A stretch of 64,000 nt of DNA, taken from positions 1,936,258 to 2,000,257 of the forward strand of contig NW_003314283.1 in assembly GCF_000143415.4 (NCBI RefSeq). Reading direction: 5' to 3'. Every line of letters begins with the position of its first letter. The stretch's first letter is position 1. Both the position numbers and the translations under genes were made by a program. Source of the DNA: Selaginella moellendorffii. Lineage: Eukaryota; Plantae; Lycopodiophyta. Below are positions 10,318-58,859 of this stretch, piece after piece. The notes below the pieces were generated by a model. That model saw only the letters and a program-made list of their open reading frames with translations. It was not told the DNA's origin and ran no database searches.

Positions 10318-10864
10318 CTGGAAGTCATCAAGAGGCTGCATTTGCATATTACACTTTTCTGAGCCGAAATCCAGATACAGGTTAAGTTCTTTGGGTGCTC
10401 ACTCTTTTTCCTCTATTTTCCTCCTCTTTTCAAACTTTTTCTACACTTTTTTTCAACTTTAGGGTTCAGTTTGACTACAGGGTTTCCCACTGGGTTTTCC
10501 TCCTTGTCTCCAAACTTCACACCTACCTCTTTTCTTTCTTTTCCACTTTGTTTTCTAGAGTTTCTACTATTTCACGTAGCTACCAGCACCCTAAACCCAT
10601 CAGTAGCAGAGGTACACTCTACACTCTTCAGAGGGTTCTCACGCGTCTGGAGCGAGCACAATCCACCATGGTCGCATGTTAGGGCGTGGCCACCGAGAGA
10701 GTGAAAGAGAGAGAGGGAATATTCTGGTCCTCAGAATATTCCCGATCTTCTTTGTATAAAACCCTTGCCCCACAAGGGCAAGGGGGGGCATTTTGGAAAG
10801 GGCGTTCGAAGCATTTCTCGTGTTTAAGCGAGCCTTGGGGGAAACACCCCTCCTTCCCCCAACA
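10318..10864 (-). repeat. Second LTR of element A, inverted relative to 1171-1766 and missing one TIR
   Basis: Reverse complement of ~1171-1713; mirrored spurious ORFs 1158..1349(-)/10686..10874(+) and 1331..1636(-)/10395..10682(+). Confidence 0.9.
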
Positions 10865-11522
10865 AAAGCAGTAAGGTGTTCCGCCGCTCACTTGATGGAA
10901 AGATCACTCGCACAAAGATGAGATCACCCACCTTATATTCTCTGAATTAATGATGCTCATTAGCAAACTTCTCCACTCTATCCTGAGCTGCCTACAAATT
11001 CCATTTGCACACCACCAGAATCTCATCAAGTTCTGTGGCCAAATTACTCACCTCAGAATCAAGCTTATCTTGAATTTCCTTACTCAAATCCAATCCCAAC
11101 TCCACCACTGTTTGGGGATGCCTTCCAAACATGGAAAAGTAAGGACTTAGCTTGGTTCCACTGTATTGGCTATTATTGTAAGCAAATTGCACCAATGGAA
11201 GATAAAGAACTCACTATCCTGGCCTTTGACCAATGCTACAATGTAATATATCCTCCACCACCTAATTCACACATTCAGTTTGCCCATCCGTTTAAGGATG
11301 ATCTCCACTTGAGAGTTTCAAAGTCACTTGCATAGCCTTTGTAAAGCTCTTCCAAAATCCACTGGTGAACTTTGGAACTCGATCACTAATAATATCCTTC
11401 GGGAAACCAAAATCAAGAAAAAACCTTCTCCAAATAAACCGCAGCCAAGTCTGAAGCGGTGATAGTCTTCTAAAGAGCCAATAACGGCATATACTTCGTC
11501 AACCAATCCACTATGACCCATC
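10865..11522 (-). pseudogene. Family-D integrase fragment
   Basis: VQFAYNNSQYSGTKLSPYFSMFGRHP; homologous to 58040-58290 and mirrored at ~52900-53425. Confidence 0.8.
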
Positions 11523-11526
11523 CTTT

Positions 11527-11710
11527 AGTCTCCTTAGACCATGCTATGCCACTTCTTGAGGTTCCTCACCACCCAACCACCCCCGAGCTACCTCCAAAGC
11601 TCCACTATGCTGCCGTTCCACTATGAGCCCTAGGGTAGGTTAAGTCCTAATATGCCTTAATATACCTTTCAGCCTCCCTTTGACCAATGTTGACCATATG
11701 GTCAAAGCCT
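11527..11710 (-). repeat. Family-D short LTR fragment (mirror at ~52516-52698)
   Basis: TTGAGGTTCCTCACCACCCAACCACCCC...CCCTAGGGTAGGTTAAGTCC matches 61151-61361. Confidence 0.85.
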
Positions 11711-12041
11711 TATATTGGTTGCCAAGGACATTTACAGACAACAGCAACAAACTACAACCACCCGAGCAAAAGGAAAGAAGAAGGTGATCGCTTAGTCAGT
11801 CAAAGATCCCTTGATATCAATTGCAAGTGACTCTCTGTTTGCACCAAATTTAGTAACATAGTGAGTGGCTTGTAAACTCCCCTTCAAGTCACTACTCTCA
11901 TCTCCTCCTAGGATCTAGCTTAGGTAGATTTTGAACTTATGAGTTGAGCTTACGACTTCTCAAACACAAGAAAAACATTAGCTCATTTTGAACCAACATT
12001 TTTTCATCTTTCCAATTTTGATTTAATCTATATTTCCAAGT

Positions 12042-13159
12042 TGTCACGAATCGGGTATCGAAAGTTACCTGACAAACACTCTTACCTTACTGCCACGATG
12101 GCAGGAGGTCGGTATTGCTGGACCCTTTATCAGTCCCTCTTGTTCAAATGTTAGTAAACTGAACTTTGCATCTGTACTTGGCCGGATGAGCATAAGGATG
12201 GAATTCCTAAGTGTCTATTCAGCCAAGCATACTTGGCCCGGCTTTTAATTCTCTTTTGCTCTGTCTTGCACTGGCTTGACAAGAACCCTTGCGTATTGAG
12301 ATTAGTCCCTCAATATCGCTACCGTGTTTGCCAAACACCCTCGCTATCATGCCCTTTGTGTTAGTCTCAATTCAGTCCCAAATGCTATTTATGGAAAGTG
12401 TCTAGATTTGCACATTTGGCATATCTACGGAATGTAGAGATTGTCTTGAACACAACGGTGTTCGTCCCATGTCCAAATTCGCAATCTAAGGACATTCCAT
12501 ATTTAGTAAGTTTTGAGCTTGTTGCAGAGACTAACTCTTGATACTAAGGGAGGCTTGGGGTGAAAGCCCAAAGCATGTGTTCCTCAAGGGGTGGGGGGGC
12601 CTGTCGGGGGTTCTAAATGTATAGTAGGGATAGTGGGTAGGTCGAGCATGGCCGACCAACCTGAGGCATAGTCTAGCTTTCGCTTGCGTGCCTGTCCTTG
12701 TTCTGTGTCCAGCTTGGGTCTAAGCCCAAGTTCCATTCCATGCTAGCCGGTGCAGTACCCATGCTCTCTCGTTAGGCCACCGGTATGCCGAAATAGCGCC
12801 AGACTCCGTTTTGTGTGCTGGTCCTGGCATTGGGATGCTGGTTGCTCTAGGACTGTTCCAAGTCGCTCCAGGCTCTTGTTCCTTCACTCCTTGGGTTGTA
12901 TGCTTGGGAGTTACTCCGTGGTTCAGTTCCATCACTCCTTGGCTCCACACTTGGGAGTCTGGCACCGTTCCTTCATTCAATGGCCCAAGGCCCTGAACCA
13001 CAGGTTCCACACCACTGTCCTGTGGACACGTGGCATGGACACGTGGCATGTGACATGTGGCATGTGTCACGTGGCATAAAGAGGGTTTAGGTTCCGCTTC
13101 GTGGTGTTATCCTATGGTAAATCACCATAGGATAAAGGGTCAAAACCACGTGCACTACA
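12042..13159 (+). mobile_element. Solo LTR of family C with TSD CAAGT
   Basis: TGTCACG...ACTACA termini, CAAGT at 12037-12041 and 13160-13164; reverse complement of the LTRs at 44898-46048 and 51050-52183. Confidence 0.95.
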
Positions 13160-13199
13160 CAAGTAAATTCAACAAATAAAATACAAATATAAATATAGA

Positions 13200-13983
13200 T
13201 CCAGACATTAAAAGCAATCTAAAAACACTTCTCAAGCTCCGCAACTGTAAGGCTTGCTTGTGGATGTAATGGTTGATCTTAGGATCTTGGTTTAGTTCTT
13301 GCACAAAAAGGTATTAAATGTGCTTGCAGACTAAATATATCTTTCCAATGTTCTCCATTTATGTAAAATTTGGACAGGTACAAGATGGATTTTTGTATAT
13401 TCTAATAGTGTAGCTCGTATCTTTTGACAACTCAATCACAACAACAAACTCTTTAACCATAGCATTGATGTAATTTGTCTTTGTGATTGTGCACTTTAAT
13501 TCGTTTGCCAACTTGATCTTTTCTTGCATACCTTTCAAAATGGAAGACTTATATTATACAGCCTTCCCATTCCTAGCTGGTCGTGTATCCTGGTCTAGTG
13601 TTGACATTGGTGGCATAATAGTATCAATAGCAACATTTGAGGAAGTCTTTAGCTTGAAACCTACTCTCTCTAGACTTTCAATCTCTTTTTTCAAAAGATT
13701 GCAGCTTCACTTAGCAGCTTCACAAAATCCAGCTTTAAAATAATTGAGCTGTGGATCCCACTTGTATGAGTAACAGTAGTTCCACAATAGTAAATCCAAC
13801 TTGACTGACAGCCCTTTATCCCTAGATCTCGACAGCCCTAGAAACATGGCATTGCTAAAGAACTTGAACTTATGCGAGACAATGAGCTTGACTCCTAATC
13901 ATTCCGGAGCAACATGCATTGCTTTTGGCATTGACTCTTCAAATTGCCCAATTGATACAAGAAATTGGTTTACGAGCAATAAC
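13200..13983 (-). pseudogene. SWIM zinc-finger ORF remnant (MULE-like), mirror of 44074-44850
   Basis: Minus strand YTIRIYKNPSCTCPNFT*...CKHI*YLF gives the CxC...CxH SWIM pattern, with stops. Confidence 0.6.
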
Positions 13984-14340
13984 TGTTGCAAATATAACTT
14001 TAGGTATCGAAAGTTACATATCAGCTAGTCCTTTCAGATATTCTTTTCTTACTACGATGACCGTAGGAGGTTGGTATTGTTAGACCCTTTATCAGTTCAA
14101 GTGTTAGTAAACTAGACTTTGCATTTATACTTGGCCGGACGAGCATAGGGAAAAAATTCCTAAGTGTCTATTTAGTCAAGCATACTTGGCCCGGCTTATT
14201 AATTCTCTTTTTCTCTATCTTGCACTGGCTTGATAAAAACCCTTGCATATTGAGATTAATATCTTAATATTGTTGGATGATAGCTTACCATGCCTGTCAA
14301 ACACCCTTGCTATCATACCCTTTTTGTTAGTCTCAACTCT
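13984..14340 (+). mobile_element. Older truncated family-C LTR fragment (mirror 43720-44073)
   Basis: Starts TGTTGCAA; diverged homology to 12042-12370 (CATACTTGGCCCGGCTT, CTTGCACTGGCTTGA). Confidence 0.75.
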
Positions 14341-16399
14341 ACCCCTATTAAGTAAAAACGAGCTTGGAAAGTAAAAACTAGATGAATTGGTGCCGAGTGA
14401 ACCCATTGATAGTACTCTCAAAAGAAAGATGAAGGGGTCAATAACTTATTCATTCAAGCATCCTCCAATACTTGCGCAACTTCTCATTTCTCAAAAGAAT
14501 CTCTACATCAAGACCATAGCACCAATAAGACATTATTAATACCAAAGCTTCCACTTAGGAAATAGATGATGCTAATCAAAAAATGTCAACAACACAAATA
14601 TGTGTGGCCAACCTTATCACATGTCTAGCAATAAACATTATGGTCATAACTACGTCCTTGCCCTTGTCTTTGAACACAAGCAACAATAGCATCAACTTCT
14701 ATCAGAACAAGATCATCTCCCACAAAAAGTGGCATTAAAGCATATGCAACAATAAGTGAAAGAAGTGATGTTCCATAATGTTATGCTAGTCAAAGAATGT
14801 TGTCTAAGGTGACTGGAGCTAGTGCATATATGAGTCCCATAAGACATTGCTGAAGCATTGGCCACAATATTCCCAATTTATTCCGCTCCGACATAATTGG
14901 CTATATACAAAGTAGGAGGATTTAGAAGTAAAATTGCATCGTTGACGAAAATGACCCCTAATAAAGATAATGCAATTCTTATAAGGCTTGTCAATATGTC
15001 TAAATAATTGTTTGATTGTGCTCAAACCATTGTACCATTGCAATGCTATCCCTTTAAAACATGTGGGGAAATTATATAGACACTAAATATCATCCCAAAA
15101 ATGATAAGTGGTAATCACTATAAAGTGATCAAACTAATGATATACATCATCCCCAAAATTCCCACAAAAGAACTCCAACTGAACTCAATGATGGGCAACA
15201 ATAGTAAGAGATACACCACATGCCATGAATGCCACTATCAATTGAGTCTGATTGTTCAATTGCAATTACATAGCATTGAGAAATTGCACCAACTTTTACT
15301 CTAGAGTCAAAGAAGGAGGAAGTTACTATTTTGCCATAAAGATGAATGGAAAAAAGCAAAAAAAATAAAAAGAAAAAAAGAAATTGAAAAGCTACATAAA
15401 TAAGAGAGATCTAGATAATGCAAAAGCTAAATCTAAACCAAACACTCCTTAAAGACAATTAGAATTACCCTTCACTTCCACTAATATGAGTGCATTAAAT
15501 ATGGAAATGGAATACAAAAATGTGTAATCTCAAAACCCTAGCTTATATACAGGAGCAAGTGGTTCAAATTGAAATCAATTTTATGGCTATCAAAATTCCA
15601 CTATGTTAATATTAATATATGGCATTATCAAAAAAATTATTTTACTTATATTTTATAGAATATTTATATTAATTAATAATATAAAACTAAATAAATATTA
15701 TTATACATGAAAAAGTTCAATATGCACAATAAATATTTTTCAGAAATTGTTCAATAAGGAACTTCTTTACTTTAGAAGTTTATAACTACAGCAAGCTATA
15801 TAAAATTAAATATAAAATGCTAGCTTTCAAAGATGTCATCTTGATCATACATTTTAAATTTAGAAAAATGTTTTAAATTAAAAGAATGACGTTAATTATT
15901 TTTCACTTTAAGGAAAATGGGAATATATCTATGATACCCATATATATTCTATAATAATCCTCAATTTTAATAAACTTTTCTCTAATTCATTTATAATGGG
16001 GTAGGGGATATGGGCAATTCCAAATATAATGGGGATAATGGGTAGGTTGAGGTATGAACTACTTGAGATATTATTTATCTCCCCATTAGGTGTGCTATCT
16101 TTTGTTTTGAATCTTGCTTATATCTAAGCCTAAACTCTACCATGTTAGTTGGTGTATTTTGCTATAAATATGCTAAAATCATCTAGCTTTGTTTTGCATG
16201 TTGATTTTAGAGTTGGAATTCTAAATGCTCTAAAACTATTATGATATTGCTCCATGTTCATGTTCCTTCATTTTTTTGTTATATGCTTAAGAGTTTAACT
16301 TCATCCTTTTGTTCACTGTTAGCTCTAAAACTTAGATTCTGTTCTGGTGCCCTTGTTCAAGGGTTAAATTCCATTTTATAATTATTCACTATAGGGAAG

Positions 16400-17191
16400 T
16401 TATGGTAGCTCTTCATCCTGTTCATTCCATATACTAATATTGTATAGAGTTTTTCTCTCAATAACAGCATAGGATATTGCACTTCCTACCATCAACAAAG
16501 AGAGGTACCAACTGAAAAGCAATGTTCCCATAGCTTTGGACTGGTTGACAAGGTTTTCACTGCCACACTCGATCTTTTGGTGGTGACGAACAAACACTTG
16601 GCAACCCAGAGGCAGGAACGTTGCTGGGAACACAAGAAGTAATGAGAGCTGAAGCAGCCAAATGCCATGGAAGATGATACAAATTGACTTCCAAAACTTG
16701 ATCATCATGGCATTGTGATTCTGTGGCACAAACACTTCCACGAGGCTTGAGAACATACAGGCAGTCACAATGAGCTGTAGAAGCATATGATAATGTCCTT
16801 CCACGCCGACATGATCCGTGGAATGCCAATGAAAGAGGAAGAGTTCTTGGGCGAACGCTGCTGCTTCCATGAGACTTACAAAAGCACTTGGCAAGTGTAG
16901 CTTGGAACGTAAACAGAGTGCATAGATCATGAACGGAATAGCCATGGAGATGTGCTCCAGGTCAGGATAGCTTCGTGTTGGCTGAAGAATGCAGTGGAAA
17001 GTGATGACTCCTGCACTCCCAAGGAAGAGAATGTAAAACTCAGCTGGCTTTGTAATGAGGGAGAGTCGCCCAGGTTTTTCATGGCCTCGAAAACGAGATG
17101 CTGCATTCGTGAGAAGAAGCAAGAGTCCCCAAAAGATGAACGCAATTGCTGGAATACCATGACCAAGGAACACAAGAAATCTGTTTGCCAT
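16400..17191 (-). CDS. TMEM45/DUF716 family multi-pass membrane protein, copy 1
   Basis: Intact intronless 263-aa ORF with GHGIPA, LEHISM, AFAQELFLFHWHSTDHVGVEGHYH, FHGIW and PLGC motifs typical of plant TMEM45. Confidence 0.9.
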   Translation of the reverse strand: MANRFLVFLGHGIPAIAFIFWGLLLLLTNAASRFRGHEKPGRLSLITKPAEFYILFLGSAGVITFHCILQPTRSYPDLEHISMAIPFMIYALCLRSKLHLPSAFVSLMEAAAFAQELFLFHWHSTDHVGVEGHYHMLLQLIVTACMFSSLVEVFVPQNHNAMMIKFWKSICIIFHGIWLLQLSLLLVFPATFLPLGCQVFVRHHQKIECGSENLVNQSKAMGTLLFSWYLSLLMVGSAISYAVIERKTLYNISIWNEQDEELP

Positions 17192-17794
17192 TGTATCACA
17201 TGTTTCCTTGACAAGCTTGAAATTTAAGGTGATGTATCACCGGGTCAAGGACGGTATTCTTATACTCATGTTAAAGCCGGTCATTGGTTGGTTGGCTATT
17301 CATTGATTGACCAGTATTGAAGAGCTTAGACTTTGATCAAAGTAAAATATCGAAAGTTCTGTATCCACCTTGACCAACATTTCTGAGTGACTAACTTCTG
17401 TCATCTTTATTTGTCATGTATTCTTCCATTGACCACCACTATATGCTGGAATACCATGACCAAGGAACACTAGAAATCTGTTTGCCATTGTGTCACATGT
17501 GCTTGAAATTTAAAGTGATGTATGACCGGGTCAAGGACGGTATTCTGACACTCATGTAGTCGGTCATTGGTTGGTTTGATCCGAAGAGCCTAGACTTTTC
17601 AAATTAAAGTATGGAAAGTTCTGTATCCACTGTTCATTTGCCTATTTCTGGGTTTGCTATTGTATTGTCATGTTCTTCCATTGCCTAAACTTTGATCAGA
17701 GTAAAGCATCTGAATCCACCACGACCTAGACTCATGGAGGTCAATTGCTCATCAGCTTTTTCATTTGAGTTCTGGATTAACAAGTTAGCATTTC

Positions 17795-20030
17795 TTAAGA
17801 ACTGCCAAGACGAGGAAGAAATGAAGGTATGCTGAGGCCAATAGATGCGTCCTCATGTTCCTTTGCCCGAAGCTTATACCTCCAACTTTGAAGGCTGTCC
17901 CAGAACGTGATGCCTAAAAATGTGACCCAAAAGCCAATAAACACACCGCAGCCAAATGCCCACACTGAAGCCTCACGGAAGAGGAAGTCCTCCCAACTTT
18001 TGTGACTTGCAGGGTGCTCTTGATCCTTTGTTGCATAGCCACAAGGAGACAATGGAAACCCACAAAGGTTCTTATTGCCTTGGAATGCAAGTGGAAACCG
18101 AGTGTTTAAATTGTATGCCGTTGGGACCAATCCGCTTAAGTTGTTGAATGAAACATTAAAGGCTGACAAAGGCAATTCCCCAAACTCGTTTGGGATCCTG
18201 CCTTGGAGCATGTTCCAGGATAAGTCAAGCGACTGAAGCTTTTTCAAGCTGGAAAGGTTGAGAGGTATGGCACCGGTGAACTGGTTGTGCGAGAGGTTAA
18301 GATGCATTAGTCCAACCAGTTGCCCAATTTCTTCTGGGATGACACCCTCGAGAGAGTTGCTTGAGATGTCCAATGAAGTCATGTTGTTTGCAACAACGAT
18401 CGTTGTCCGATCAAACTGTATCCTTGCGTCGTTGACTATGATGACCAGGCTCAACTCTACCCCTGTGTAAATGCCAAGATTCAAATCCCCACTCGTGTTG
18501 CCCTTGAAACCTTGAAACTTCCAAAGCGCGCGTGGCACCTGCCCTGTGAGCTTATTGTTTGACAGATCTAGAATTTGGAGCCAAATGAGATTGGTGGTGC
18601 AATCTGGAATCTGCCCAAACAGCTTGTTGTATGCAAAAGACAATATCATAATTCCTGACCAGCTGCAAGTTTCTTGACTGTGAAATGGTTCCTACTATAG
18701 TCCATGACTCTGAGATAAGTGGAATTCAAGCTTTTTGCTGGAATTGTGCCGCTCAACGTGTTGTTGGAAATGACAAAGAAGACCAAGCTTGTCAAGTTAC
18801 TCAAGTCAAGCAGCACCTCACCCGTGAAATTGTTCTGCGCAAAGTTGACAACCTTGAGCTGGGAGCAATTCCCTAGCCTTGAGCTAATCTCTCCCTGGAA
18901 CTCGTTCGTTGAGAGATCCAAGTAAACCAGGTTAGTGCATGCACCAAACGTTGGCATTTTGCTCCGTATCAAGTTTCCGTGGAGGTCGAGATAGCCAAGA
19001 TTGGTGCATTTGTCGAGTGGAGGAACTTCATTTCTGAGATAGTTGTCACTCAAGTCAAGTATCTCAAGACGATCCAGCTGGCTAATGCCTTTTGGAATGC
19101 TTCCATCTAGATAGTTTTTGTTGAGGTGCAATTGCTGGAGAGCCTTGATCTCTGTGATCAAATGCGGAATGATTCCTGTCAGGCTGTTAACGTCCAAGCG
19201 AAGTAGTACAACAGGAGAAGACGCATTAAACATGGGAATGTTTCCTGTAAAGTTGTTGTAATGGAGCTCTAGGTGCGTTAGAGATGGCATGCCCACCATA
19301 ACATCCGAAGGAATCGATCCGTTGAGAAAATAGTTTTGCGATAGTCCCAACCACTTTAGCCTACGAAGACCAGCAAAAGAGCCAGGTAATGGGCCATATA
19401 GAAGGTTGTCAGACATGTCTAGAAATGTGAGGTGCGAAAGGTTTCCAAGAGTGATTGGTATAAGCCCCTCCAAATTGTTTGTAAAAAGTGATAAACTTTC
19501 CAATTTCTTGAGCTTACCCAGCGATGGAGATATAGAGCCCGTTAAGGTGTTGTTTTCCAGACTGAGGAACCGCAGCTTGGAGCAGTTCCCAACACTCGAT
19601 GGAATAGACCCGCTCAAGAAATTATCAGATAGCCAGAGCTCAGTGAGATTCTGGAGCTGCCCTAATGTTGCTGGAATATGGCCAGTCAATTGGTTCCCTC
19701 TCAAGTTGAGCTCTGTGAGTGAGGAGCAATTTCCGAGGGTGGTAGGAATTTGCCCCGTTATTTTAGATCGAGCTCTGAAAGATATGAAAGCTGCCCAAGC
19801 CTTGGCGTGAGAGTTCCCACCAAGGCTTCATCAAGATCCACAGAGGATAGATGTATGGACACTACTTGGCGTTTAGAATTGCAACTAATGCCTCTCCAGC
19901 TGCAAATCCCATCCTTGCTTCCTTCATGCCAGTTAGAAAAGGTAGAATTGCTTTGGAACATGCCTTGCTTGAACTCCAGTAGAATTTCCATGTCCATGAT
20001 CTTATACAAAAGAAAGAAAACCTTAAGAGT
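17795..20030 (-). pseudogene. LRR receptor-like protein (RLP), two frameshifts, copy 1
   Basis: LRRNT (CSWRGISC), plant LRRs LxxLxLxxNxLxGxIP, island, C-cap FQGNKNLCG, GxxxG TM helix, short tail, no kinase; split into three ORFs. Confidence 0.9.
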
Positions 20031-20169
20031 TTCATTTCAGAATCATGTGATCATACATCAGACGACAGATTCATGCCAAGTGCGAAGAGAAGTACGATGC
20101 CCCAGAGTCATGGTCTGTGGTCAAAGTCATGCAACTACAAGTTTTAATCTTGATTGGCAAGCATGCTGT

Positions 20170-22351: not shown

Positions 22352-22435
22352 AACCTCAAAAGGTGGCATAGCATAGTCTAGGGCGATTATATCTCTGTCT
22401 TTTTATGCCGGATCATAACATTGGTATCAGAGGAA

Positions 22436-36879: not shown

Positions 36880-36975
36880 CGGTGATACATCACCTTAAAT
36901 TTCAAGCTTGTCAAGGAAACATGTGATACAATGGCAAACAGATTTCTTGTGTTCCTTGGTCATGGTATTCCAGCA
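36438..36975 (+). repeat. Tandem duplication of TMEM45 promoter plus first 15 codons
   Basis: 36438-36677 resembles 36690-36975; both end in ATGGCAAACAGATTTCT...ATTCCAGCA. Confidence 0.9.
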
Positions 36976-40935: not shown

Positions 40936-41657
40936 TGCTTCTTCTCACGAATGCAGCATCTCGTTTTCGAGGCCATGAAAAACCTGGGCGACTCTCCCTC
41001 ATTACAAAGCCAGCTGAGTTTTACATTCTCTTCCTTGGGAGTGCAGGAGTCATCACTTTCCACTGCATTCTTCAGCCAACACGAAGCTATCCTGACCTGG
41101 AGCACATCTCCATGGCTATTCCGTTCATGATCTATGCACTCTGTTTACGTTCCAAGCTACACTTGCCAAGTGCTTTTGTAAGTCTCATGGAAGCAGCAGC
41201 GTTCGCCCAAGAACTCTTCCTCTTTCATTGGTATTCCACGGATCATGTCGGCGTGGAAGGACATTATCATATGCTTCTACAGCTCATTGTGACTGCCTGT
41301 ATGTTCTCAAGCCTCGTGGAAGTGTTTGTGCCACAGAATCACAATGCCATGATGATCAAGTTTTGGAAGTCAATTTGTATCATCTTCCATGGCATTTGGC
41401 TGCTTCAGCTCTCATTACTTCTTGTGTTCCCAGCAACGTTCCTGCCTCTGGGTTGCCAAGTGTTTGTTCGTCACCACCAAAAGATCGAGTGTGGCAGTGA
41501 AAACCTTGTCAACCAGTCCAAAGCTATGGGAACATTGCTTTTCAGTTGGTACCTCTCTTTGTTGATGGTAGGAAGTGCAATATCCTATGCTGTTATTGAG
41601 AGAAAAACTCTATACAATATTAGTATATGGAATGAACAGGATGAAGAGCTACCATAA
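40833..41657 (+). CDS. LTR-TMEM45 fusion ORF / 5'-truncated TMEM45 copy 3
   Basis: 34 LTR-derived codons plus a junction ATG (40935) are in frame with TMEM45 from residue 25; one H->Y change (FHWYSTDH). Expression unknown. Confidence 0.55.
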   Translation: MELGLRPKPDVEQGQARKRKLNYASGWSAMPDLPMLLLTNAASRFRGHEKPGRLSLITKPAEFYILFLGSAGVITFHCILQPTRSYPDLEHISMAIPFMIYALCLRSKLHLPSAFVSLMEAAAFAQELFLFHWYSTDHVGVEGHYHMLLQLIVTACMFSSLVEVFVPQNHNAMMIKFWKSICIIFHGIWLLQLSLLLVFPATFLPLGCQVFVRHHQKIECGSENLVNQSKAMGTLLFSWYLSLLMVGSAISYAVIERKTLYNISIWNEQDEELP

Positions 41658-44073: not shown

Positions 44074-44850
44074 GTTATTGCTCGTAAACCAATTTCTTGT
44101 ATCAATTGGGCAATTTGAAGAGTCAGTGCCAAAAGCAATGCATGTTGCTCCGGAATGATTAGGAGTCAAGTTCATTGTCTCGCATAAGTTCAAGTTCTTT
44201 AGCAATGCCATGTTTCTAGGGCTGTCGAGATCTAGGGATAAAGGGCTGTCAGTCAAGTTGGATTTACTATTGTGGAACTACTGTTACTCATACAAGTGGG
44301 ATCCACAGCTCAATTATTTTAAAGCTGGATTTTGTGAAGCTGCTAAGTGAAGCTGCAATCTTTTGAAAAAAGAGATTGAAAGTCTAGAGAGAGTAGGTTT
44401 CAAGCTAAAGACTTCCTCAAATGTTGCTATTGATACTATTATGCCACCAATGTCAACACTAGACCAGGATACACGACCAGCTAGGAATGGGAAGGCTGTA
44501 TAATATAAGTCTTCCATTTTGAAAGGTATGCAAGAAAAGATCAAGTTGGCAAACGAATTAAAGTGCACAATCACAAAGACAAATTACATCAATGCTATGG
44601 TTAAAGAGTTTGTTGTTGTGATTGAGTTGTCAAAAGATACGAGCTACACTATTAGAATATACAAAAATCCATCTTGTACCTGTCCAAATTTTACATAAAT
44701 GGAGAACATTGGAAAGATATATTTAGTCTGCAAGCACATTTAATACCTTTTTGTGCAAGAACTAAACCAAGATCCTAAGATCAACCATTACATCCACAAG
44801 CAAGCCTTACAGTTGCGGAGCTTGAGAAGTGTTTTTAGATTGCTTTTAAT
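44074..44850 (+). pseudogene. SWIM zinc-finger ORF remnant (MULE-like)
   Basis: PSCTCPNF...CKHI at ~44669-44740 with in-frame stops. Confidence 0.6.
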
Positions 44851-44897
44851 GTCTGGATCTATATTTATATTTGTATTTTATTTGTTGAATTTACTTG

Positions 44898-47800
44898 TGT
44901 AGTGCACGTGGTTTTGACCCTTTATCCTATGGTGATTTACCATAGGATAACACCACGAAGCGGAACCTAAACCCTCTTTATGCCACGTGACACATGCCAC
45001 ATGTCACATGCCACGTGTCCATGCCACGTGTCCACAGGACAGTGGTGTGGAACCTGTGGTTCAGGGCCTTGGGCCATTGAATGAAGGAACGGTGCCAGAC
45101 TCCCAAGTGTGGAGCCAAGGAGTGATGGAACTGAACCACGGAGTAACTCCCAAGCATACAACCCAAGGAGTGAAGGAACAAGAGCCTGGAGCGACTTGGA
45201 ACAGTCCTAGAGCAACCAGCATCCCAATGCCAGGACCAGCACACAAAACGGAGTCTGGCGCTATTTCGGCATACCGGTGGCCTAACGAGAGAGCATGGGT
45301 ACTGCACCGGCTAGCATGGAATGGAACTTGGGCTTAGACCCAAGCTGGACACAGAACAAGGACAGGCACGCAAGCGAAAGCTAGACTATGCCTCAGGTTG
45401 GTCGGCCATGCTCGACCTACCCACTATCCCTACTATACATTTAGAACCCCCGACAGGCCCCCCCACCCCTTGAGGAACACACGCTTTGGGCTTTCACCCC
45501 AAGCCTCCCTTAGTATCAGGAGTTAGTCTCTGGGACAAACTTGAAACTTACTAAATATGGAATGTCCTTAGATTGTGAAGTTGGACATGGGACGAACACC
45601 ATTGTGTTCAAGACAATCTCTACATTCTGTAGATATGCCAAATGAGCAAATCTAGACACTTTCCATAAATAGCATTTGGGACCGAATTGAGACTAACACA
45701 AAGGGCATGATAGCGAGGGTGTTTGGTAGACACGGTAAACTATCATGTAGCGATATTGAGGGACTAATCTCAATACGCAAGGGTTCTTGTCAAGCCAGTG
45801 CAAGACAGAGCAAAAGAGAACTAAAAAGCCGGGCCAAGTATGCTTGGCTGAATAGACACTTAGGAATTCCGTCCTTATGCTCATCCGGCCAAGTACAGAT
45901 GCAAAGTTCAGTTTACTAACACTTGAACAAGAGGGACTGATAAAGGGTCCAGCAATACCGACCTCCTGCCATCGTGGCAGTAAGGTAAGAGTGTTTGTAA
46001 GGACTAGCCGACAGATAACTTTCGATACCCGAAGTCACATTCGTGACACTCTCCCCCCCTAGGGAAGATCGACGTCCTCGTCGATGCATACTCGAGTCTA
46101 GAATACTGCCAAGGAAACAACTCTAGAAAAAATTCACAATATTCACACTATGTGAGAAATGCACCAATTGAAATGAGTTAGGAGACAACCTCTTTGTCTA
46201 ACGCGGATGCGCTACCAACTCAGACACCTTCTGGCCATCGCCGACAAGGAAATGACCAATGGAGTTAGCCACCATTGCTGCTCTGGGAGTCACCCAACTT
46301 ACAAAAGTGTGATATGCCCTTGCCCGCAGGAACATAGAGAGAGAAGCCAGAAGCCCCAACCTTCCTAAGCAAAGAAACCAAACCTGTCGGTAAGGTTTAG
46401 ATAGACTACTGTAAATAGGCAGTTAGAGTTGTTTACACGGTCACGCCCTTTTAACGGAATAAGGAACATCGACAGAGAGGCGGGTTATGTGACCAATCGA
46501 CAGTAGCTACCACATGACTAGAGATTTCAACATGCACACGAAGTGCCGAAGCCAATTTGCCTATTACTGGCCCAAACTCAAAGATCAATAAATGGACAAT
46601 ATCAAAGTCAGAGACAATGATATCTTAGAGACTTAATTACCAGTGATTAAATTTTAGATTAGAACACAAAAGTATTCCAAATAATTTATCATCCGATAAA
46701 CTAGTATTATAGTAGATAGGAACCACCAAGTTCATCAAAATTGGTAAACACAGGATTCACCATCCAACAAACTTCAATAGCAAGTATATCATCAAATAAA
46801 CTCAATGATGAAACTTAACTACTGAAAATAGCAGACAGTAAACCAACAATTTACTAAAGATAACTCAAAGAACACAAAGTATCTGATGATTCATGGATTG
46901 ACAAGCACAATGCTCGCGAATGTATCACCTGAAGGAAATAACATCCCAACCTATCAAAACTAACTCGAGCAATAATCAACAGAATAGAATGAATGTGGCA
47001 AGACCAACAAACACTCATTCATGCCAACTATCACACTAGCCAATCCGAATAGATCCCAGCTAACAACACTAAGGAACTCAAGTTGCCTAAGCAAATGTCA
47101 GCAACATCCTACTGATGTCTCAAACCCAAAAGACCAATCTAGAGCAAACCACAAAGAACATGTGGTATTGCGAAAAGCCAAAAGCCATCAAAGAGAACAA
47201 CTAACCATCATGAAAGATCATCAATTATCCCATCAAAAAGATATGCCAAATCATCGTAAAAAAAACAATCTACCATCCCGAAGAACAGTAAATCATTCTA
47301 TACCAACAATAATCAAGCAAAATCTTTTGACAAGGATAAACAACTATCCTAGATAATAGTTAGTCATCACCAATGATTGCTAGATGCAAAAGCCAACTTC
47401 AACATCGAAGCTAATGAGCCTAAATTCCTTCCCCAACAACTTCTAACAAATGGAATAATAAGTATGAAAACTCAAAGAACCAAAAGCTTAAAGAAGTCTA
47501 TAGCCAAGTCATGCATAACAATGATCACGAGTCTCGCATGAATTAACTTCAATGCTAAGAAGAAAATCATGGTATGACCCACAATATCCTCCTTAACACA
47601 TCTATAAGCTAAACTCCATAATGCAAAGCTAATGAAGAGCATGTCTGCATCAATCCAAAAGCTAAGCATAACAAAGCTATACTTGACAAGTGATCACCAA
47701 ATGATCCTCCATGAATCCATTTATAGCAAGACGTAACTCACTTCATAACAAGCACAAGAAGAATCATCAATGATCGATATATTTTAACTCAAACCCAATA

Positions 47801-50800
47801 AGGATTTAAACTTTCCAATATCGATCACTAGTTCTTCTGCTTGCAGAGTTAGCATAGTCCACGACTGAATCACTTTTCAAAGAAAAGCCAAAGCTCAACC
47901 CCTACTAAATAATCTCGTCTAGAACACAACTAACTCAAATTTGCCACTCAATTCATTTGAACGTCAACATAGTTGCTAACTAGCAAATGTGTGAATGCTA
48001 ATAATATAAAGCTACAGCTCAAGCATCAACACTAATTGCATTGAGACTAATGAAACTCATTATCAATCTTATGGAGAGACATCTCATCTCACTCAAATCT
48101 CAACATCATCAATGTCAACGACAAGGCATCACTTCAATGCCATCAACACCATAACAAAGCTAGAAGAAAGCAAGAGTGAATCACCACTCAAAACTCTCCA
48201 GCAACTATGCTAACCAAAGTTGAAGATACTTTACTCAGTATCCGAGACTAATCCTTCAGCAAAACTCAGTTACAGATAACACTTCATCACGGAGTGATTC
48301 ACCACATCCAAGACTCAATGAAATCCAACACCACAACTAAATGCAACCAAATGATATCAACAAAGGTAAAGTCAACATGTTAACATGGAAAACCCATGTA
48401 AGTTTAACGACACGATCCTCCGCAACACCATCCGATAAAGCAAGCCCATCACCGCTAAATTATCATCGAGTAAAACAAGTGTCAAAAACCCTTGACAAAA
48501 TCTACAAGCAATCTCTAGTTGCAAAGCAACCAACAATCACTTTTCAATTTGCCTTCACAAGACCCAAACACTAAACTCATGCCATCAAGTTATATACTTG
48601 TCTAATATCCCCAGGTGCGAGATGAAAGTTCATGGACAAGCACGAACTAAATAACTACTTGAATCCAACTTAACCACGATAAACTCACCAATGCATTTAG
48701 CCAATAGCTTTGAGCATGCCTTGAAGAGGTTAGCTACACATGATCAACACTAAGTTGAAACTTAAGTGAAGACCATGAGATGGACTCATGTCAGTACACA
48801 ACTTCCACTTAGACAAAGCTATAGTATGGGTACTAACATCTCAACAATAAACAACTAAGTTGGACATCACCATCCTCAGCCAAGGCATAGGGCCACCAAG
48901 ACTAAGTCAAGATTAGTGAGAGCTCACTACTCTCATAGAGTCTAATGAAATGCAAAGTACAACCTGCCACCAAGCATAATACTACAGAAGAAAGGCACAA
49001 GGGTCACCCTTCTTAGAAAAGTGCAACGGCCACTTTTCTACACTAACTCCAGACTCTATCCAACTCAATTGCCTTAGCCCCAAAAGTTAGCATCCCTTTC
49101 GGGTTGCATCATACAAATTACTTACTAAGGTCTAAGCCAACCAAAGTCAACTCTAACCCCTTCACTAGTTTGTACTGGCTTACGAAAATGGAATGGTTTT
49201 CAGACAAAGTGATAATAGATTAGCCATTGGAAAAGTCTAAGAAAATTTGTGGAAAATTTTTCCATTCTAGAGAAAGAATGACTCTCAATCTAGGAATGCA
49301 AATTTTCAAAACTCAACTAACTTCCTCCTACTTACAACTTCACATAGGTTCACCTCAACACAAATTCTCATGACCTATAGTATGCTTAAGCCTCGAACAT
49401 CTTTTTGCCCATATATTCGATATCCAACACTGATATCCGCAGAATGCAAAATGAACATCTAAAGCTTGATCACGAAAACCACATCTTCAGATATCCATAT
49501 TGCACTAACACTCTTTTTCAATCATTCTCAAGATCCAATGTGAAGCCAAAACACTAACAAGAAAAATGACATGGAAAATCAAGCTTTAAGGAAAATTCCT
49601 CATCACTCGAACAACAATGCCACTTCCACTAACACAAGTGCTAGCAATGTCAATGCTTTAACTTCACACCTTCTCTATCCAACAATCTACTCCAAGTATT
49701 AACGGATAAACTAACAAGTTATAGCAAGTGAATGCTATAACCCTTTCCAACACCTTATGGGCCAACTCTCAAAAGAACAACATACCAACTTAAGCTTAGC
49801 ATAATGGACCACTATCAAGAATTCAGTCAAAACTACTACAATGCTACTTCGTGCAAGTAGACTAGCCTCACCATCAACCACTTTGGGGTTGATCATCGTT
49901 TAACCAAGCAACTTCGTAAACACATTGCTCATTATCACATGGATATGATATGGAAATCACAATGTCTTGATCATCAATCAAGCAACACACAAGCAATGCC
50001 AATGTCATTACTTCAAAGGTGTAGGTGAGTATCAAGTGTCAACTCAATTCGACAAAATGCAACATAAATGCCACACTCCACCGATAGAGACTTACAACAC
50101 CCAACACCACTAACTTTTGTTCACAACACAGACAAACTCATGCCACTCTCTTTCCAACCAAACTCAAAACTAGTCCAACACCAAGCTACTCAAGGAGCAA
50201 TAGCAAAGTTCCCCGGAAAAGAATTAAGCATTGCAACCCAAGTCTTCAATAACAAGCCTAGACAAAATGGTTTAGCGCTTTACTGCTATCCACCCCATAA
50301 CTGATCATTTGTAAGACCATCATCTCCAAGATGCATCAAGATAGGGACTCTTGATTACATACCATGAACACAAGCAATGAGTTAATACCTCGTTGCAAAT
50401 CATCTCTCCAAGAAGAGAGAATGATTTACGTGTTTGATCCTTCGTCCCCGATGACTCTCTTTTCGGTCTAATCTTTGATTACACCTCAAGTTTGCTTTCA
50501 CACTGCCTTCAGTCCAATCCAAGAAAAGTTTATGAGAGAGCACAGCAACAATTACTTGAATCAATAGACTCATCCCTACAGTCTTGATTGATCCACTTGT
50601 AATCATGCCTAGGAAGGATCCACTAGTGCCGTGCTAAATAGCTATGGACCAGCTTATTTACCACTCATAGCAAACCCAGGGAAAGTTTACTTTCACCCAT
50701 GGTACATGGAAAAACTCATAGAACTACTGGAACAACTCATGGAACCACCGATAGGCTAACATTAATCCTGCCAACTCAAAGCATATCCTTGAGTTGCTAA

Positions 50801-52183
50801 TGCACTCACGAGCCTAAGCGCAAACTCGTGCAAATTGGAACAACTTAATCCCTCTTGTGAGCTCAAGCTCAAGCTCACATCATAAGGTACAAGAAGGTAA
50901 CAAAAACCATACCCAAGGAACAATTGCAAAGCCTTTACACCTAAGTGTGTACCCACTCGAATCATCGTTTTCATCTCTGCGTATGCAACAAGATTAGTTG
51001 CCCAATCTCATTGTATAGTACTCGCTGAGACTCATTCTCTGATACCAAATGTAGCGCACGTGGTTTTGACCCTTTATCCTATGGTGATTTACCATAGGAT
51101 AACACCACGAAGCGGAACCTAAACCCTCTTTATGCCACGTGACACATGCTACGTGTCACATGCCATGTGTCCATGCCACGTGTCCACAGGACAGTGGTGT
51201 GGAACCTGTGGTTCAGGGCCTTGGGCCACTGAACGAAGGAACGGTGCCAAACTCCCAAGCATGGAGCCAAGGAGTGACGGAACCGAACCACGAAGCAACT
51301 CCTGAGCATACAACCCAAGGAGCGAAGGAACAGGAGCCCAGAGCGACTTGGAATAGTCCTAGAGCAACCAACATCCCAATGCCAAGACTAACACGCAAAA
51401 CGGAGCCAAATGGAGTCTGGTGCTATTTCGGCATACCGGTGGCCTAATGCGAGAGCATGGGTACTCCACCAGCTAGCATGGAATGGAACTTGGGCTTAGA
51501 CCCAAGCCGGACGTAGAACAAGGACAGGCACGCAAGCGGAAGCTAGACTATGCCTCAGGTTGGTCGGCCATGCCCGACCTACCCACTATCCCTACTATAC
51601 ATTTAGAACCCCCCACGGCCCTCCCCCCCCCCCCCCTTGAGGAACACACGCTTTGGGCTTTCACCCCAAGCCTCCCTTAGTATCAGGAGTTAGTCTCTGC
51701 GACAAACTCAAAACTTACTAAATATGGAATGTCCTTAGATTGCGAATTTGGACATGGGACGAACACCGTTGTGTTCAAGACAATCTCTACATTCCGTAGA
51801 TATGCCAAATGTGCAAATCTAGACACTTTCCATAAATAGCATTTGGGACCGAATTGAGACTAACACAAAGGGCATGATAGCGAGGGTGTTTGGCAAACAC
51901 GGTAGCGATATTGAGGGACTAATCTCAATACGCAAGGGTTCTTGTCAAGCCAGTGCAAGACAGAGCAAAAGAGAACTAAAAAGCCGGGCCAAGTATGCTT
52001 GGCTGAATAGACACTTAGGAATTCTGTCCTTATGCTCATCCGGCCAAGTACAGATGCAAAGTTCAGTTTACTAACACTTGAACAAGAGGGACTGATAAAG
52101 GGTCCAGCAATACCGACCTCCTGCCATCGTGGCAGTAAGGTAAGAGTGTTTGTCAGGTAACTTTCGATACTCGATTCGTGACA
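44898..52183 (-). mobile_element. Intact non-autonomous LTR retrotransposon (family C), TSD ACTTG
   Basis: LTRs 51050-52183 (5') and 44898-46048 (3'); Met PBS TGGTATCAGAG (complement 51037-51047); PPT AGGGGGGGAGAG (complement from 46049); ACTTG at 44893-44897 and 52184-52188; no long ORF. Confidence 0.95.
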
Positions 52184-52699
52184 ACTTGGAAATATAGATT
52201 AAATCAAAATTGGAAAGATGAAAAAATGTTGGTTCAAGATGAGCCAATGTTTTTCTTGTGTTTGAGAAGTTGTAAGCTCAACTCATAAGTTCAAAATCTA
52301 CCTAAGCTAGATCCTAGGAGGAGATGAGAGTAGTGACTTGAAGGGGAGTTTACAAGCCACTCACTATGATACTAAATTTGGTGCAAACAGAGAGTCACTT
52401 GCAATTGATATCAAGGGATCTTTGACTGACTAAGCGATCACCTTCTTCTTTCCTTTTGCTCGGGTGGTTGTAGTTTGTTGCTGTTGTCTATAAATGTCCT
52501 TGGCAACCAATATAAGGCTTTGACCATATGGTCAACATTGGTCAAAGGGAGGCTGAAAGGTATATTAAGGCATATTAGGACTTAACCTACCCTAGGGCTC
52601 ATAGTGGAACGACAGCATAGTGGAGCTTTGGAGGTAGCTCGGGGGTGGTTGGGTGGTGAGGAACCTCAAGAGGTGGCATAGCATGGTCTAGGGAGACTA

Positions 52700-53425
52700 G
52701 ACCTCAATTTTTATTGGAGGAATATGAAAACTAATATTCTCAAGTATTGTAAATCATGCGAGCTTTGTCAACGGGTTAAGGTGCCATGGGAGAAGTGGGG
52801 GGCATTTTTGCAACTTTTACCTATTCCTTAGGGCTGTTAGTGTAGTATCTCTATGGATTTCATCACTTGTTTGCTACTAACACAGAGGGAAAAAGAGCAA
52901 GGATGGGTCATAGTGGATTGGTTGACGAAGTATATGCCGTTGTTGGCTCTTTAGAAGACTATCACTGCTTCAGACTTGGCTGCGGTTTATTTGAAGAAGG
53001 TTTTTTCTTGATTTTGGTTTCCCGAAGGACATTATTAGTGATTGAGTTTCAAAGTTCACCAGTGGATTTTGGAAGAGCTTTACAAAGGCTATGCAAGTGA
53101 CTTTGAAACTCTCGAGTGGAAATCATCCTTAAACGGATGGGCAAACTGAATGTGTGAATCAGGTGGTGGAGGATATATTACATTGTAGCATTGGTCAAAG
53201 GCCAGGATAGTGAGTTCTTTATCTTCCATTGGTGCAATTTGCTTACAATAATAGCCAATACAGTGGAACCAAGCTAAGTCCTTACTTTTCCATGTTTGGA
53301 AGGCATCCCCAAACAGTGGTGGAGTTGGGATTGGATTTGAGTAAGGAAATTCAAGATAAGCTTGATTCTGAGGTGACTAATTTGGCCACAGAACTTGATG
53401 AGATTCTGGTGGTGTGTAAATGGAA
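52700..53425 (+). pseudogene. Family-D integrase fragment (mirror copy)
   Basis: CKSCELCQRVK at ~52748 and VQFAYNNS at 53229. Confidence 0.8.
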
Positions 53426-53532
53426 TTGGGGAAGGAGGGGTGCTTCCCCCAAGGCTCGCTTAAACACGAGAAATGCTTCAACGCCCTTTGCAAAATGCCC
53501 CCCCTTGCCCTTGTGGGGCAAGGGTTTTATAC
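53426..53532 (+). repeat. Terminal fragment of the family-A LTR marking the outer end of the palindrome
   Basis: Reverse complement of ~10755-10862. Confidence 0.85.
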
Positions 53533-58855: not shown

Positions 58856-58859
58856 CCAT

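Follow-up and report, generated by a model that had tools for sequence, protein, structure and literature searches.

The 64,000-nucleotide stretch of DNA analysed here (the window) very likely carries a genuine palindromic segmental duplication of the nuclear genome of Selaginella moellendorffii, and not an assembly artefact. By exact-protein look-up and named homologues, the window was placed on scaffold GL377587.1 of the S. moellendorffii v1.0 assembly (GCA_000143415.2), and the whole analysis is based on this one Sanger whole-genome assembly. A preliminary description had reported a 43-kb palindrome in three blocks, with an arm at 10755-21208 mirrored up to 53532, and these coordinates proved correct by self-BLAST, repeat search, and inspection by eye. 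Self-BLAST and the repeat search revealed three mirrored pairs: 10997-13159 with 53427-51050 (95.6-97.9% identity), 12068-17121 with 46002-40936 (99.3%), and 15600-21208 with 38522-32913 (99.93%), while the outermost 110 bp (10755-10864) were paired by eye with 53532-53428. Direct reading of both outer ends bore out the reciprocal indels described earlier (10865-10993 in the left arm only, 52700-52898 in the right arm only), and the solo LTR at 12042-13159 and the full-length element at 44898-52183 indeed sit in the same ACTTG target duplication.

Jackson et al. (2021) defined palindromes as inverted repeats of >8 kb with >99% identity and <500 kb between the arms (PMC8327919). Here, the left arm is 10,454 bp long and its mirror at 32913-53532 carries insertions; the arms show 6 differences in 12576-21208 (99.93% identity), with about 98% identity in the outer 1.8 kb; and 11.7 kb lies between the main arms, or 1.7 kb between the inner 114-bp arms. 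Arm identity in the other haplotype of the sequenced plant is borderline by this definition, at 98.6% in the outer 6 kb and up to 99.9% in the inner 2.3 kb.

Architecture of the palindrome

The features of the arms are as follows.

10755-21208: left arm, 10,454 bp, mirrored at 53532-32913 in three blocks; going inward, it holds the terminal 110 bp of a gypsy LTR, TE fragment 'a', the E1 solo LTR and AT-rich 'c', followed by DUF716 and the RLP pseudogene and lastly by a gypsy fragment and the opening 262 bp of the B2 LTR
10865-10993: stretch of 129 bp in the left arm only
12042-13159, minus strand: solo LTR of E1, a chimera, with the same ACTTG target duplication as full-length E1
16400-17191, minus strand: DUF716 (TMEM45-type) copy 1, intact 263-aa ORF (Pfam PF04819, E 3.6e-30)
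17795-20120, minus strand: RLP (LRR receptor-like) pseudogene copy 1, with LRR Pfam matches
32913-38522: right-arm block 1, mirroring 21208-15600, 99.93% identical to the left arm
34001-36326, plus strand: RLP pseudogene copy 2, with LRR Pfam matches
36931-37722, plus strand: DUF716 copy 2, intact, with Pfam match
38523-40935, plus strand: Y, insertion in the right arm only, 29 bp of filler plus 2,384 bp from an E1-type element
40833-41657, plus strand: DUF716 copy 3, 5'-truncated chimeric 274-aa ORF, with Pfam match
40936-44897: right-arm block 2, mirroring 17121-13160; its first 1,522 bp repeat 37001-38522
44898-52183, minus strand: E1, full-length LTR retrotransposon, with LTRs at 44898-46039 and 51050-52183 that are about 93% alike
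52184-53532: right-arm block 3, mirroring 12041-10755 at about 98%, including the right-only 52700-52898
53532|53533: outer (second) junction of the inverted copy

The centre is made up of the following parts.

21209-22854: S-left, the rest of the B2 LTR plus other sequence, on the left side only, with no mirror copy
22855-30603, plus strand: B, young LTR retrotransposon with TG..CA ends and a 5-bp ATGGG duplication, hemizygous
30604-31009: first 406 bp of S-right, on the left side only
31010-31123: inner mini-arm of 114 bp, with an inverted copy at 32799-32912 (98.2%), found in both haplotypes
31124-32798: true loop and symmetry centre, 1,675 bp, holding an old 87% copy of part of 'c'
32799-32912: inverted copy of the inner mini-arm, joined to the main right arm at 32912|32913

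The 11.7-kb spacer of the preliminary description holds as the distance between the main arms. Since 31010-31123 recurs inverted at 32799-32912, however, the symmetry centre is 31124-32798, the true loop measures 1.7 kb, and 21209-31009 is a left-only stretch. The centre is therefore compound, with a 1.7-kb loop, 114-bp inner arms, and a 2.05-kb stretch on one side only. An array of 11-12-bp tandem repeats was found by TRF at 21184-21432 in the B2 LTR. The novel junction at 32912|32913 reads GACCCG|ACAAATATTGCC on the minus strand.

Most of the left-only stretch is taken up by B, which occurs only in the haplotype of this window. Its LTR at 22855-24038 is 99.9% identical to the 3' LTR at 28807-29990. 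The sole run of N in the window (24039-24281) falls within the 5' LTR of B, thus in the centre and not in an arm, and divides the left-arm contig from the right-arm contig. Beyond the gap, 24282-24519 is only about 82% like the 3' LTR of B, while the final 86-145 bp of the 5' LTR are about 99% identical to the end of the 3' LTR and are followed by a PBS-like TGGTA, so that sequence alone gives no continuity across the gap. The adjacency and orientation of the two contigs are nevertheless fixed, because the ATGGG target duplications of B (22850-22854 and 30604-30608) match and a clean empty site is present in the other haplotype, where S-left is contiguous with the sequence from 30604 onward.

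E1 has an ACTTG target duplication, a TGGTATCAGAG-type primer-binding site on the minus strand, which we take to be of the iMet type, and no long ORFs. In its solo LTR, the outer ~530 bp resemble the 5' LTR of E1 (98%), while the inner part matches the 3' LTR of the right arm with zero differences inward of 12576; the 15 private differences of the left arm all fall within 12328-12575. Insertion Y contains the end of an E1-type internal region together with the initial 535 bp of an LTR, and a direct repeat of 1,522 bp lies on either side of it (37001-38522 and 40936-42457, 99.93%). Y is missing from the other three arms, namely the left arm here and both arms of the other haplotype. Reading Y and 'd' as an LTR element with 'd' as its LTRs was ruled out, as 'd' contains most of a conserved DUF716 ORF; the blunt, filler-bearing junctions also speak against it.

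For the genes, the RLP plus TMEM45 module described earlier was recovered as three DUF716 ORFs and two LRR ORF pairs by Pfam, but the RLP proved to be frameshifted in every arm. Two 10-bp frameshift deletions and one 3-bp deletion, scored against the intact 754-aa ORF of the paralog in L007, are common to four of four arms, and the RLP is by its reading frame a pseudogene in all of them, broken already before the duplication. A further fold-back of the same RLP-DUF716 module (L007) lies about 98 kb away and is confined to one haplotype. The exact protein of DUF716 copy 1 is on record in S. moellendorffii GL377587.1. In copy 3, 34 codons derived from Y take the place of the first 23, and a single H-to-Y substitution is present; from residue 24 onward, 238 of 240 residues are identical by BLASTP. 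Exact-protein look-up of the gene records returned no match for the chimeric 274-aa product, nor was an exact match on record for the left-arm DUF716 protein of the other haplotype. The net gene content is two intact, divergently oriented DUF716 copies per haplotype. Annotation of the locus calls for caution, as gene counts would otherwise mis-score what are two intact DUF716 genes, one chimeric copy, and two dead RLPs.

ORFs of the left arm lie on the minus strand and those of the right arm on the plus strand, so both sets face outward, and the inverted gene copies lie about 20 kb apart, or about 12 kb without B. Because of this divergent orientation, read-through from the genes' own promoters, and with it the long dsRNA from the arms that had been proposed, would not be favoured.

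The second haplotype and the origin of the palindrome

The published S. moellendorffii assembly contains two haplotypes of about 106 Mb each (PMC7801247). The interval compared, GL377697.1:182449-251547, starts within the left arm and takes in the right flank; it runs collinear with the window, at 97-99% identity, as far as position 64000. Within it, GL377697.1 has inverted arms of its own, with 98.6% identity over 6 kb, 99.9% over 2.3 kb, and 95.6% in the innermost 390 bp, and a single gap-free contig holds the inner left arm, the centre, the whole right arm, and the right flank. The junction sits in the left arm of GL377697.1, parted from the arm only by a solo LTR with an ATGGA duplication. 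As judged from the two assembled haplotypes, the palindrome must have arisen once, before the haplotypes of the sequenced plant diverged, because both carry the identical junction and the identical 114-bp inner inverted repeat. Each scaffold also has private events: in GL377697.1, the left arm has gained a B4 solo LTR and a gapped TE insertion and lost 468 bp, and this window has the left-arm solo LTR and the right-arm Y. Across the arms, the 'c' region occurs in three sequence types.

A different reading, in which the other haplotype was single-copy and the junction had exploited a 22-bp inverted microhomology already present, was ruled out by further upstream sequence: the '21 bp' at the GL377697.1 junction are the end of its left arm, cut by the solo-LTR insertion. 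We make no claim of microhomology at the junction.

The event that gave rise to the palindrome copied about 10-17 kb in inverted orientation beside the original; this stretch comprised a TE fragment, E1, the AT-rich stretch, the beginning of an LTR, and two genes, an intact one of DUF716/TMEM45 type and an LRR receptor-like one that was already broken. The compound centre could have been produced if the template switched twice, or if a fold-back was followed by a deletion near the centre. The replication-based origin put forward in the preliminary description does not stand as a specific conclusion, since the compound junction fits template switching and equally a fold-back followed by deletion.

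Orientation of the centre and exchange between the arms

In this window, the junction side of the centre faces the right flank, while in GL377697.1 it is the intact-LTR (S-left) side that faces the same right flank; the sole informative arm difference near the centre (20878) tracks the centre and not the flank. This would agree with the proposal that the spacer can flip, provided that both assemblies threaded the near-identical arms correctly. We consider it rather more probable than the reverse that the centre is truly inverted between the haplotypes, so that opposite isomers would coexist in one plant, and recombination between the arms may have inverted the spacer.

The arms run without a difference for at most about 3.6 kb here and about 2-4.5 kb in GL377697.1, so the linkage of the outer arm to the centre leaned on mate pairs, and therefore the orientation difference could be mis-threading. 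The palindrome would then be real and shared, with the opposite orientation produced by an assembler crossing between near-identical arms. We regard this as a serious possibility, though not the more probable one. It draws on the paucity of differences between the arms, with only 6 in 8.6 kb here and only about 3 across 15826-20325 in GL377697.1, and on the N gaps inside the TE insertion that interrupt the left arm of GL377697.1. Against it, Y and the six arm-specific differences split the identity here into stretches of ≤3.6 kb, which 8-kb and fosmid mates, presumably among the JGI libraries, could bridge; moreover, the right arm, centre, and flank of GL377697.1 form one gap-free contig, and the outer 6 kb of its right arm differ by 1.4% from its left arm.

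Comparison of the four arms bore on their homogenisation, which had also been suggested earlier. The arms of this haplotype have 6 differences across 12576-21208 (8.6 kb), versus 88 substitutions in about 7.9 kb aligned (about 1.1%) between the arms of GL377697.1. At 42 sites, both arms here differ from both arms of GL377697.1, whereas only 3 sites, all of them in the LTR, follow arm position instead. With the paralogous module (L002/L007) as outgroup, 11 sites could be polarised, and derived substitutions were shared by both arms at 5 of these here and at 6 in GL377697.1. Arms of the same haplotype thus share derived changes without these being present in the orthologous arms, which, at the level of the assembled sequence, points firmly to arm-to-arm gene conversion in each haplotype and sustains the earlier suggestion. 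No GC bias was seen in the 11 polarised sites (3 weak-to-strong, 5 strong-to-weak), which are too few for such a comparison. In this haplotype, homogenisation of the arms was nearly complete over the whole stretch between a point within the E1 LTR and the centre. The outer 1.8 kb, about 2% diverged while the rest is nearly identical, we read as a probable limit of the conversion tract.

It is doubtful, although conceivable, that one long break-induced replication event between the arms, rather than short-tract gene conversion, re-copied the ~8.6 kb. Such an event would have started at mispaired E1 LTRs, deleted the left-arm E1, and generated Y and the 1.5-kb duplication by template switching. 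The identity boundary does lie within the solo LTR, exactly where it switches from 5'-LTR-like to 3'-LTR-like, but any conversion tract ending in the LTR gives the same apparent boundary. The 29-bp filler, the blunt junctions, and the flanking 1,522-bp duplication of Y also suit this account, as does the LTR piece in Y (positions 1-535), which is complementary to the 5'-LTR-like piece kept in the solo LTR. In a comparison with the right-arm copies of E1, Y is nearer to that of the other haplotype (97.2%) than to that of this window (93.7%), as a copy of the lost left-arm E1 might be. However, Y is absent from the left arm despite identical sequence on both sides, which leaves the order of events ambiguous.

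The later private changes comprise the reduction of the left-arm E1 here to a solo LTR, the insertion of Y in the right arm with the 1.5-kb duplication that gave rise to the third, truncated DUF716 copy, and the TE insertions and deletion in the left arm of GL377697.1. The most far-reaching combination is that the palindrome is recombining actively and its two flip-flop isomers occur one on each haplotype of the sequenced plant, that a single long repair event in one haplotype re-copied 8.6 kb, left the chimeric solo LTR, and created the third gene copy, and that the module or region is recurrently prone to fold back; as a joint claim, this is unlikely.

That the palindrome is instead an artefact is highly improbable, whether as a chimeric clone or read that folded back or as a single-copy locus whose two haplotypes were joined head to head. 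In favour of an artefact are the near-identity of the arms, their placement on separate contigs with an N gap between them, the known presence of both haplotypes in the assembly, and a second fold-back of the paralogous module at the very end of the same scaffold. Against it, GL377697.1 is a separate assembly product, one contig of which contains both arms as well as the same junction, the contig join here is fixed by B, and there are four distinct arms and a paralog, each with private SNPs and TE events, where a single-copy diploid locus would yield only two sequences. The head-to-head joining of two haplotypes is ruled out because the other haplotype forms a scaffold of its own in which both arms occur, and a read or clone fold-back, already discounted in the preliminary description, is ruled out by those same two arms and by the private TE events of each.

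Comparison with known palindromes

Palindromes are well described on the primate and mouse X and Y chromosomes, among them P1-P8 of the Y and 26 human X palindromes (PMC8327919; PMC3723533). Like these, the present locus is a gene-carrying inverted repeat of >8 kb around a spacer with arm identity attributed to gene conversion; in the X and Y palindromes, as may also have happened here, inter-arm recombination inverts the spacer, commonly and polymorphically, and rearrangements cluster at the symmetry centre. It differs in belonging to a lycophyte and in being placed on a scaffold only, and its short arms of 10-20 kb consist mostly of TE sequence, one of the two genes in the module is dead, and arm identity varies between haplotypes (>99.9% versus 98.6-99.9%). 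We know of no sex chromosomes in the assembly of the heterosporous S. moellendorffii.

At human FLNA-EMD (X palindrome P24), both orientations coexist as neutral alleles (Small et al. 1997, as cited in PMC8327919). There, a segment between inverted repeats occurs in two orientations within one species; here the two orientations would be those of the haplotypes assembled from a single individual. Fold-back inverted duplications and inverted copy-number variants occur in yeast, cancer, and human DUP-TRP/INV-DUP, as outlined in PMC10622511 and PMC10766186. On those accounts, the inverted copy likewise adjoins the original, the loop is short and unique, and the junction is compound; they concern fresh somatic or de novo events with known intermediates, whereas this locus is old, inherited, and interstitial.

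Among plants, the locus resembles Arabidopsis PAI1-PAI4, soybean CHS I, and Antirrhinum SULF, natural inverted gene duplications that give rise to hairpin RNA and silence relatives. In all of them a plant gene is inversely duplicated within a few tens of kb, but those loci are read through into a hairpin transcript, while here the genes face away from the centre at that ~20-kb distance.

To our knowledge, nearly all of what has been established about gene conversion and spacer flipping in large palindromes comes from the sex chromosomes of mammals. At about 43 kb, the locus described here is a compact example from a vascular plant lineage that diverged early. As the diploid Sanger assembly supplies both alleles, with four arms, a paralogous outgroup, and dated TE insertions in one individual, it would be possible to measure directly at this locus how fast, and in what order, conversion, inversion, and centre-biased rearrangement took place.

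Mirrored arms and their gene content

Window position w corresponds to position w + 1,936,257 of scaffold GL377587.1 (GCA_000143415.2), the only scaffold on which the exact protein of the 263-aa DUF716 (TMEM45-type) ORF at 16400-17191 is on record; proteins related to it are annotated in Selaginella moellendorffii. The mirrored arms proposed in the preliminary description were borne out by a repeat search and self-BLAST, and reading by eye extended their homology outward to 10755 and 53532. The reciprocal indels it had reported are also real (10865-10993 in the left arm only, 52700-52898 in the right arm only), as is the difference between a solo LTR on the left and a full-length LTR retrotransposon, E1, on the right. 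Pfam searches returned three DUF716 ORFs and two LRR ORF pairs, in agreement with the proposed content of two RLP (LRR receptor-like) and three TMEM45-type genes.

Features of the window arms
15600-21208 with 38522-32913, inverted: mirrored pair, 99.93% (repeat search and self-BLAST)
12068-17121 with 46002-40936, inverted: mirrored pair, 99.3% (repeat search and self-BLAST)
10997-13159 with 53427-51050, inverted: mirrored pair, 95.6-97.9% (repeat search and self-BLAST)
44898-52183, minus strand: E1; ends TG..CA, target duplication ACTTG, minus-strand primer-binding site of the TGGTATCAGAG type
12042-13159: solo LTR of the left arm, at the same ACTTG site as E1
16400-17191 (-), 36931-37722 (+), 40833-41657 (+): DUF716 ORFs (Pfam)
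17795-19704 (-), 34417-36326 (+): LRR ORF pairs (Pfam)

A second haplotype with the same palindrome

The published 212.6-Mb assembly consists of two haplotypes of ~106 Mb each (PMC7801247), which bears on every artefact argument. Proteins clustering with the DUF716 and RLP products led us to a second scaffold, GL377697.1 (386 kb), and we joined the loci covering GL377697.1:182449-251547, whose 9,396-bp overlap is identical; we call this sequence alt. Collinearity between alt and the window extends over the right arm and right flank as far as window position 64000, at 97-99% identity, and alt has inverted arms of its own. Since alt 9347-63046 is free of gaps, its inner left arm, centre, whole right arm and flank lie on one contig.

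Inverted arms of alt
1-6018 with 26955-20941: 98.6%
9347-11656 with 20916-18607: 99.9%
11674-12062 with 18086-17697: 95.6%

The novel junction, read outward from the arm as GATGGACCCG joined to ACAAATATTGCCAATGC, is the same in both haplotypes, being found in the right arm of the window and the left arm of alt. In the alt left arm a solo LTR, B4 (1,634 bp, duplication ATGGA), lies 21 bp from the junction, or 16 bp without counting the duplicated ATGGA. The only economical reading of these sequences is that the palindrome had one origin, predating the haplotype split. The reading of alt as a single-copy locus with a pre-existing 22-bp microhomology was ruled out by the alt upstream sequence.

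When the four arms were compared, each arm but the right one of alt carried private events, and three sequence types were present in region 'c', an AT-rich stretch of the arms.

Private events of the four arms
Window left arm: E1 reduced to a solo LTR
Window right arm: insertion Y (38523-40935) and a 1,522-bp duplication
Alt left arm: B4 solo LTR; young TE insertion with N gaps at window-equivalent 17967; 468-bp deletion
Alt right arm: none seen

Four distinct arms and three 'c' types are impossible for a single-copy diploid locus. They exclude two haplotypes joined in the assembly as well as a fold-back read, and the preliminary argument against a fold-back artefact is upheld by the palindrome and junction that alt shares.

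The centre, its boundaries and its orientation

Window 31010-31123 recurs inverted at 32799-32912 (98.2%). This inner repeat is present in both haplotypes and places the symmetry axis inside a 1,675-bp loop (31124-32798). On the junction side, the copy jumps from arm position 21208 directly to 31010, leaving 2,052 bp of one-sided sequence (21209-22854 and 30604-31009, with element B left out). Such a centre could have formed if the template had switched twice during copying, or by a simple fold-back with a 1.7-kb loop followed by a 2-kb loss beside the centre. The B2 LTR contains a tandem array of 11-12-bp units, and the main arm terminates in its second or third unit.

At the outer ends, the left boundary falls at 10755, 110 bp into a repeat that recurs at 1171-1716, so that the left flank probably preserves the original continuity. 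At the right boundary, 53532/53533, both haplotypes have a 5'-truncated B-like element next to the arm, and this boundary is probably a second novel junction.

The repeats at 1171-1716 and 10315-10864 form a 550-bp inverted pair (90%) around a degenerate gypsy-like body with a gag match at 2882-3472, and 10755 falls inside the right-hand copy. The B-like element directly outside the right arm (53533-58031) is 81-85% similar to B from B's position 25187 on; a minus-strand gypsy element with integrase, RT and protease ORFs occupies 57947-62032, and pieces of it recur in the arms (20213-20939 and the TE fragment 'a'). The centre holds an inverted older copy of 'c' (31796-32624, matching 13175-13983 at 87%) and a direct diverged copy of 'a' (22467-22636, matching 11526-11706 at 83%). 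These older, diverged arm pieces point to previous rounds of rearrangement, or to TE sequence that centre and arms have in common.

Element B (22855-30603) is an LTR retrotransposon with TGTGAG...TTTACA ends and the 5-bp duplication ATGGG; the only N run in the window (24039-24281) falls inside its 5' LTR. The gap is outside the arms, yet it divides the left-arm contig (up to 24038) from the right-arm contig (from 24282). Upstream of it, the first 1,184 bp of the 5' LTR are 99.9% identical to the 3' LTR; downstream, both the LTR end and a PBS-like TGGTA can be recognised, but 24282-24519 is just ~82% like B's 3' LTR, so that continuity across the gap is unproven by sequence alone. The segment 24282-24662 is missing 71 bp found in relatives and ends with an 86-bp tandem duplication. 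The contig end after the gap may have been built from another B-family copy. Independent support for the join of the two contigs comes from alt, in which the site is cleanly empty of B: 22854 directly adjoins 30604, and ATGGG occurs once.

In the window, the intact B2 LTR and S-left (21209-22854) are next to the left arm and the junction side is next to the right arm, from which E1 and the right flank follow. In alt the arrangement is reversed: the left arm meets the junction side, and the right arm, from which E1 and the same right flank follow, meets S-left. Because independent identical deletions on opposite sides are implausible, the haplotypes, as assembled, are separated by an inversion whose breakpoints fall within the arms. 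Inversions of this type are a known result of intrachromatid recombination between the two arms of a palindrome (PMC8327919). As expected, arm difference 20878, the one informative difference near the centre, travels with the centre. The linkage across near-identical arms hung on mate pairs, the alt left arm is gapped, and the comparison of flanks covers the right one; the longest difference-free runs are 3.6 kb in the window arms and about 2-4.5 kb in alt. Of the spacer flip raised in the preliminary description, the opposite orientation of the two assembled centres stands, and we somewhat favor a real inversion as its source.

Copying between arms and the fate of the genes

The arms were also proposed to homogenise, and this was confirmed. 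Between 12576 and 21208 the window arms differ at 6 places (13886, 13931, a 1-nt indel at 17316, 20878, 21010 and 21177), and over 12826-21208 the alt arms show 88 differences in ~7,900 aligned positions. Across the four arms, 42 sites separate the window arms from the alt arms and 3, all in the LTR, follow arm position. With the paralogous LTP-RLP-DUF716 module (alleles L002 on GL377697.1 and L007 on GL377587.1) as outgroup for 15706-20105, 5 derived substitutions are common to both window arms and 6 to both alt arms; no GC bias was found in these 11 polarised substitutions. Since the duplication, with its shared junction, is older than the haplotype split, these derived states require arm-to-arm copying (gene conversion) in both haplotype lineages. 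The outer limit of the homogenised tract lies within the solo LTR, where a 5'-LTR-like part (98% to 51625-52157) passes into a part identical with the right-arm 3' LTR.

Site 15913, in the 'd' segment (15600-17121) that holds most of the DUF716 ORF, is G in both window arms and L007, and T in both alt arms and L002. Within each haplotype, two loci separated by more than 100 kb therefore have the same state. This may reflect an old polymorphism, or palindrome and paralogous module may occasionally convert one another.

The RLP carries two 10-bp deletions and one 3-bp deletion in 4/4 arms relative to the intact 754-aa ORF of L007; to judge from these lesions, the gene was already broken when the palindrome arose or became so early afterwards. 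DUF716 has stayed intact in every arm, with 99% identity to the paralogous copy. The third copy (40833-41657) is missing the first 23 codons and has its start inside Y, and its product was not found among annotated proteins. The genes of both arms are directed away from the centre, and transcription from their own promoters is therefore not expected to yield hairpin RNA. Insertion Y combines a 29-bp filler with 2,384 bp of E1-type sequence (the internal-region end plus LTR positions 1-535), set with blunt junctions between two 'd' copies. It is 97.2% identical to the alt E1 and 93.7% to the window E1, which are 94.9% alike; Y may be what is left of the E1 once present in the left arm, shifted during inter-arm repair.

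The L007 module (LTP_2, the intact RLP and DUF716; GL377587.1:2078072-2094916, reversed) lies ~98 kb right of the palindrome at the scaffold's very end. It has an inverted repeat of its own (1-322 and 1234-4418 versus 14458-14137 and 13223-10039, 99.87%, ~5.6-kb spacer), and L002 (GL377697.1:360338-381129) is uninterrupted through both breakpoints. This repeat is a scaffold-end artefact or else the module's second fold-back, specific to one haplotype. The two scaffolds also disagree on how the module is oriented with respect to the main palindrome. In the alt right flank, a young hemizygous LTR element absent from the window (GL377697.1 ~218633-226169, alt 36185-43721; LTRs of 1,150 bp, 99.3% identical) lies between window 55520 and 55525. 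With B, B4 and the alt left-arm TE, it makes four recent haplotype-specific LTR events within ~70 kb.

By the operational definition in PMC8327919 (arms >8 kb, >99% identity), the window structure is a large palindrome. Conversion and centre-biased rearrangement are seen here as in that family, and spacer inversion probably is as well; nothing in the structure is outside the known kind. What is new is the setting: a lycophyte host, short TE-rich arms, and a single old assembly in which both alleles can be read.
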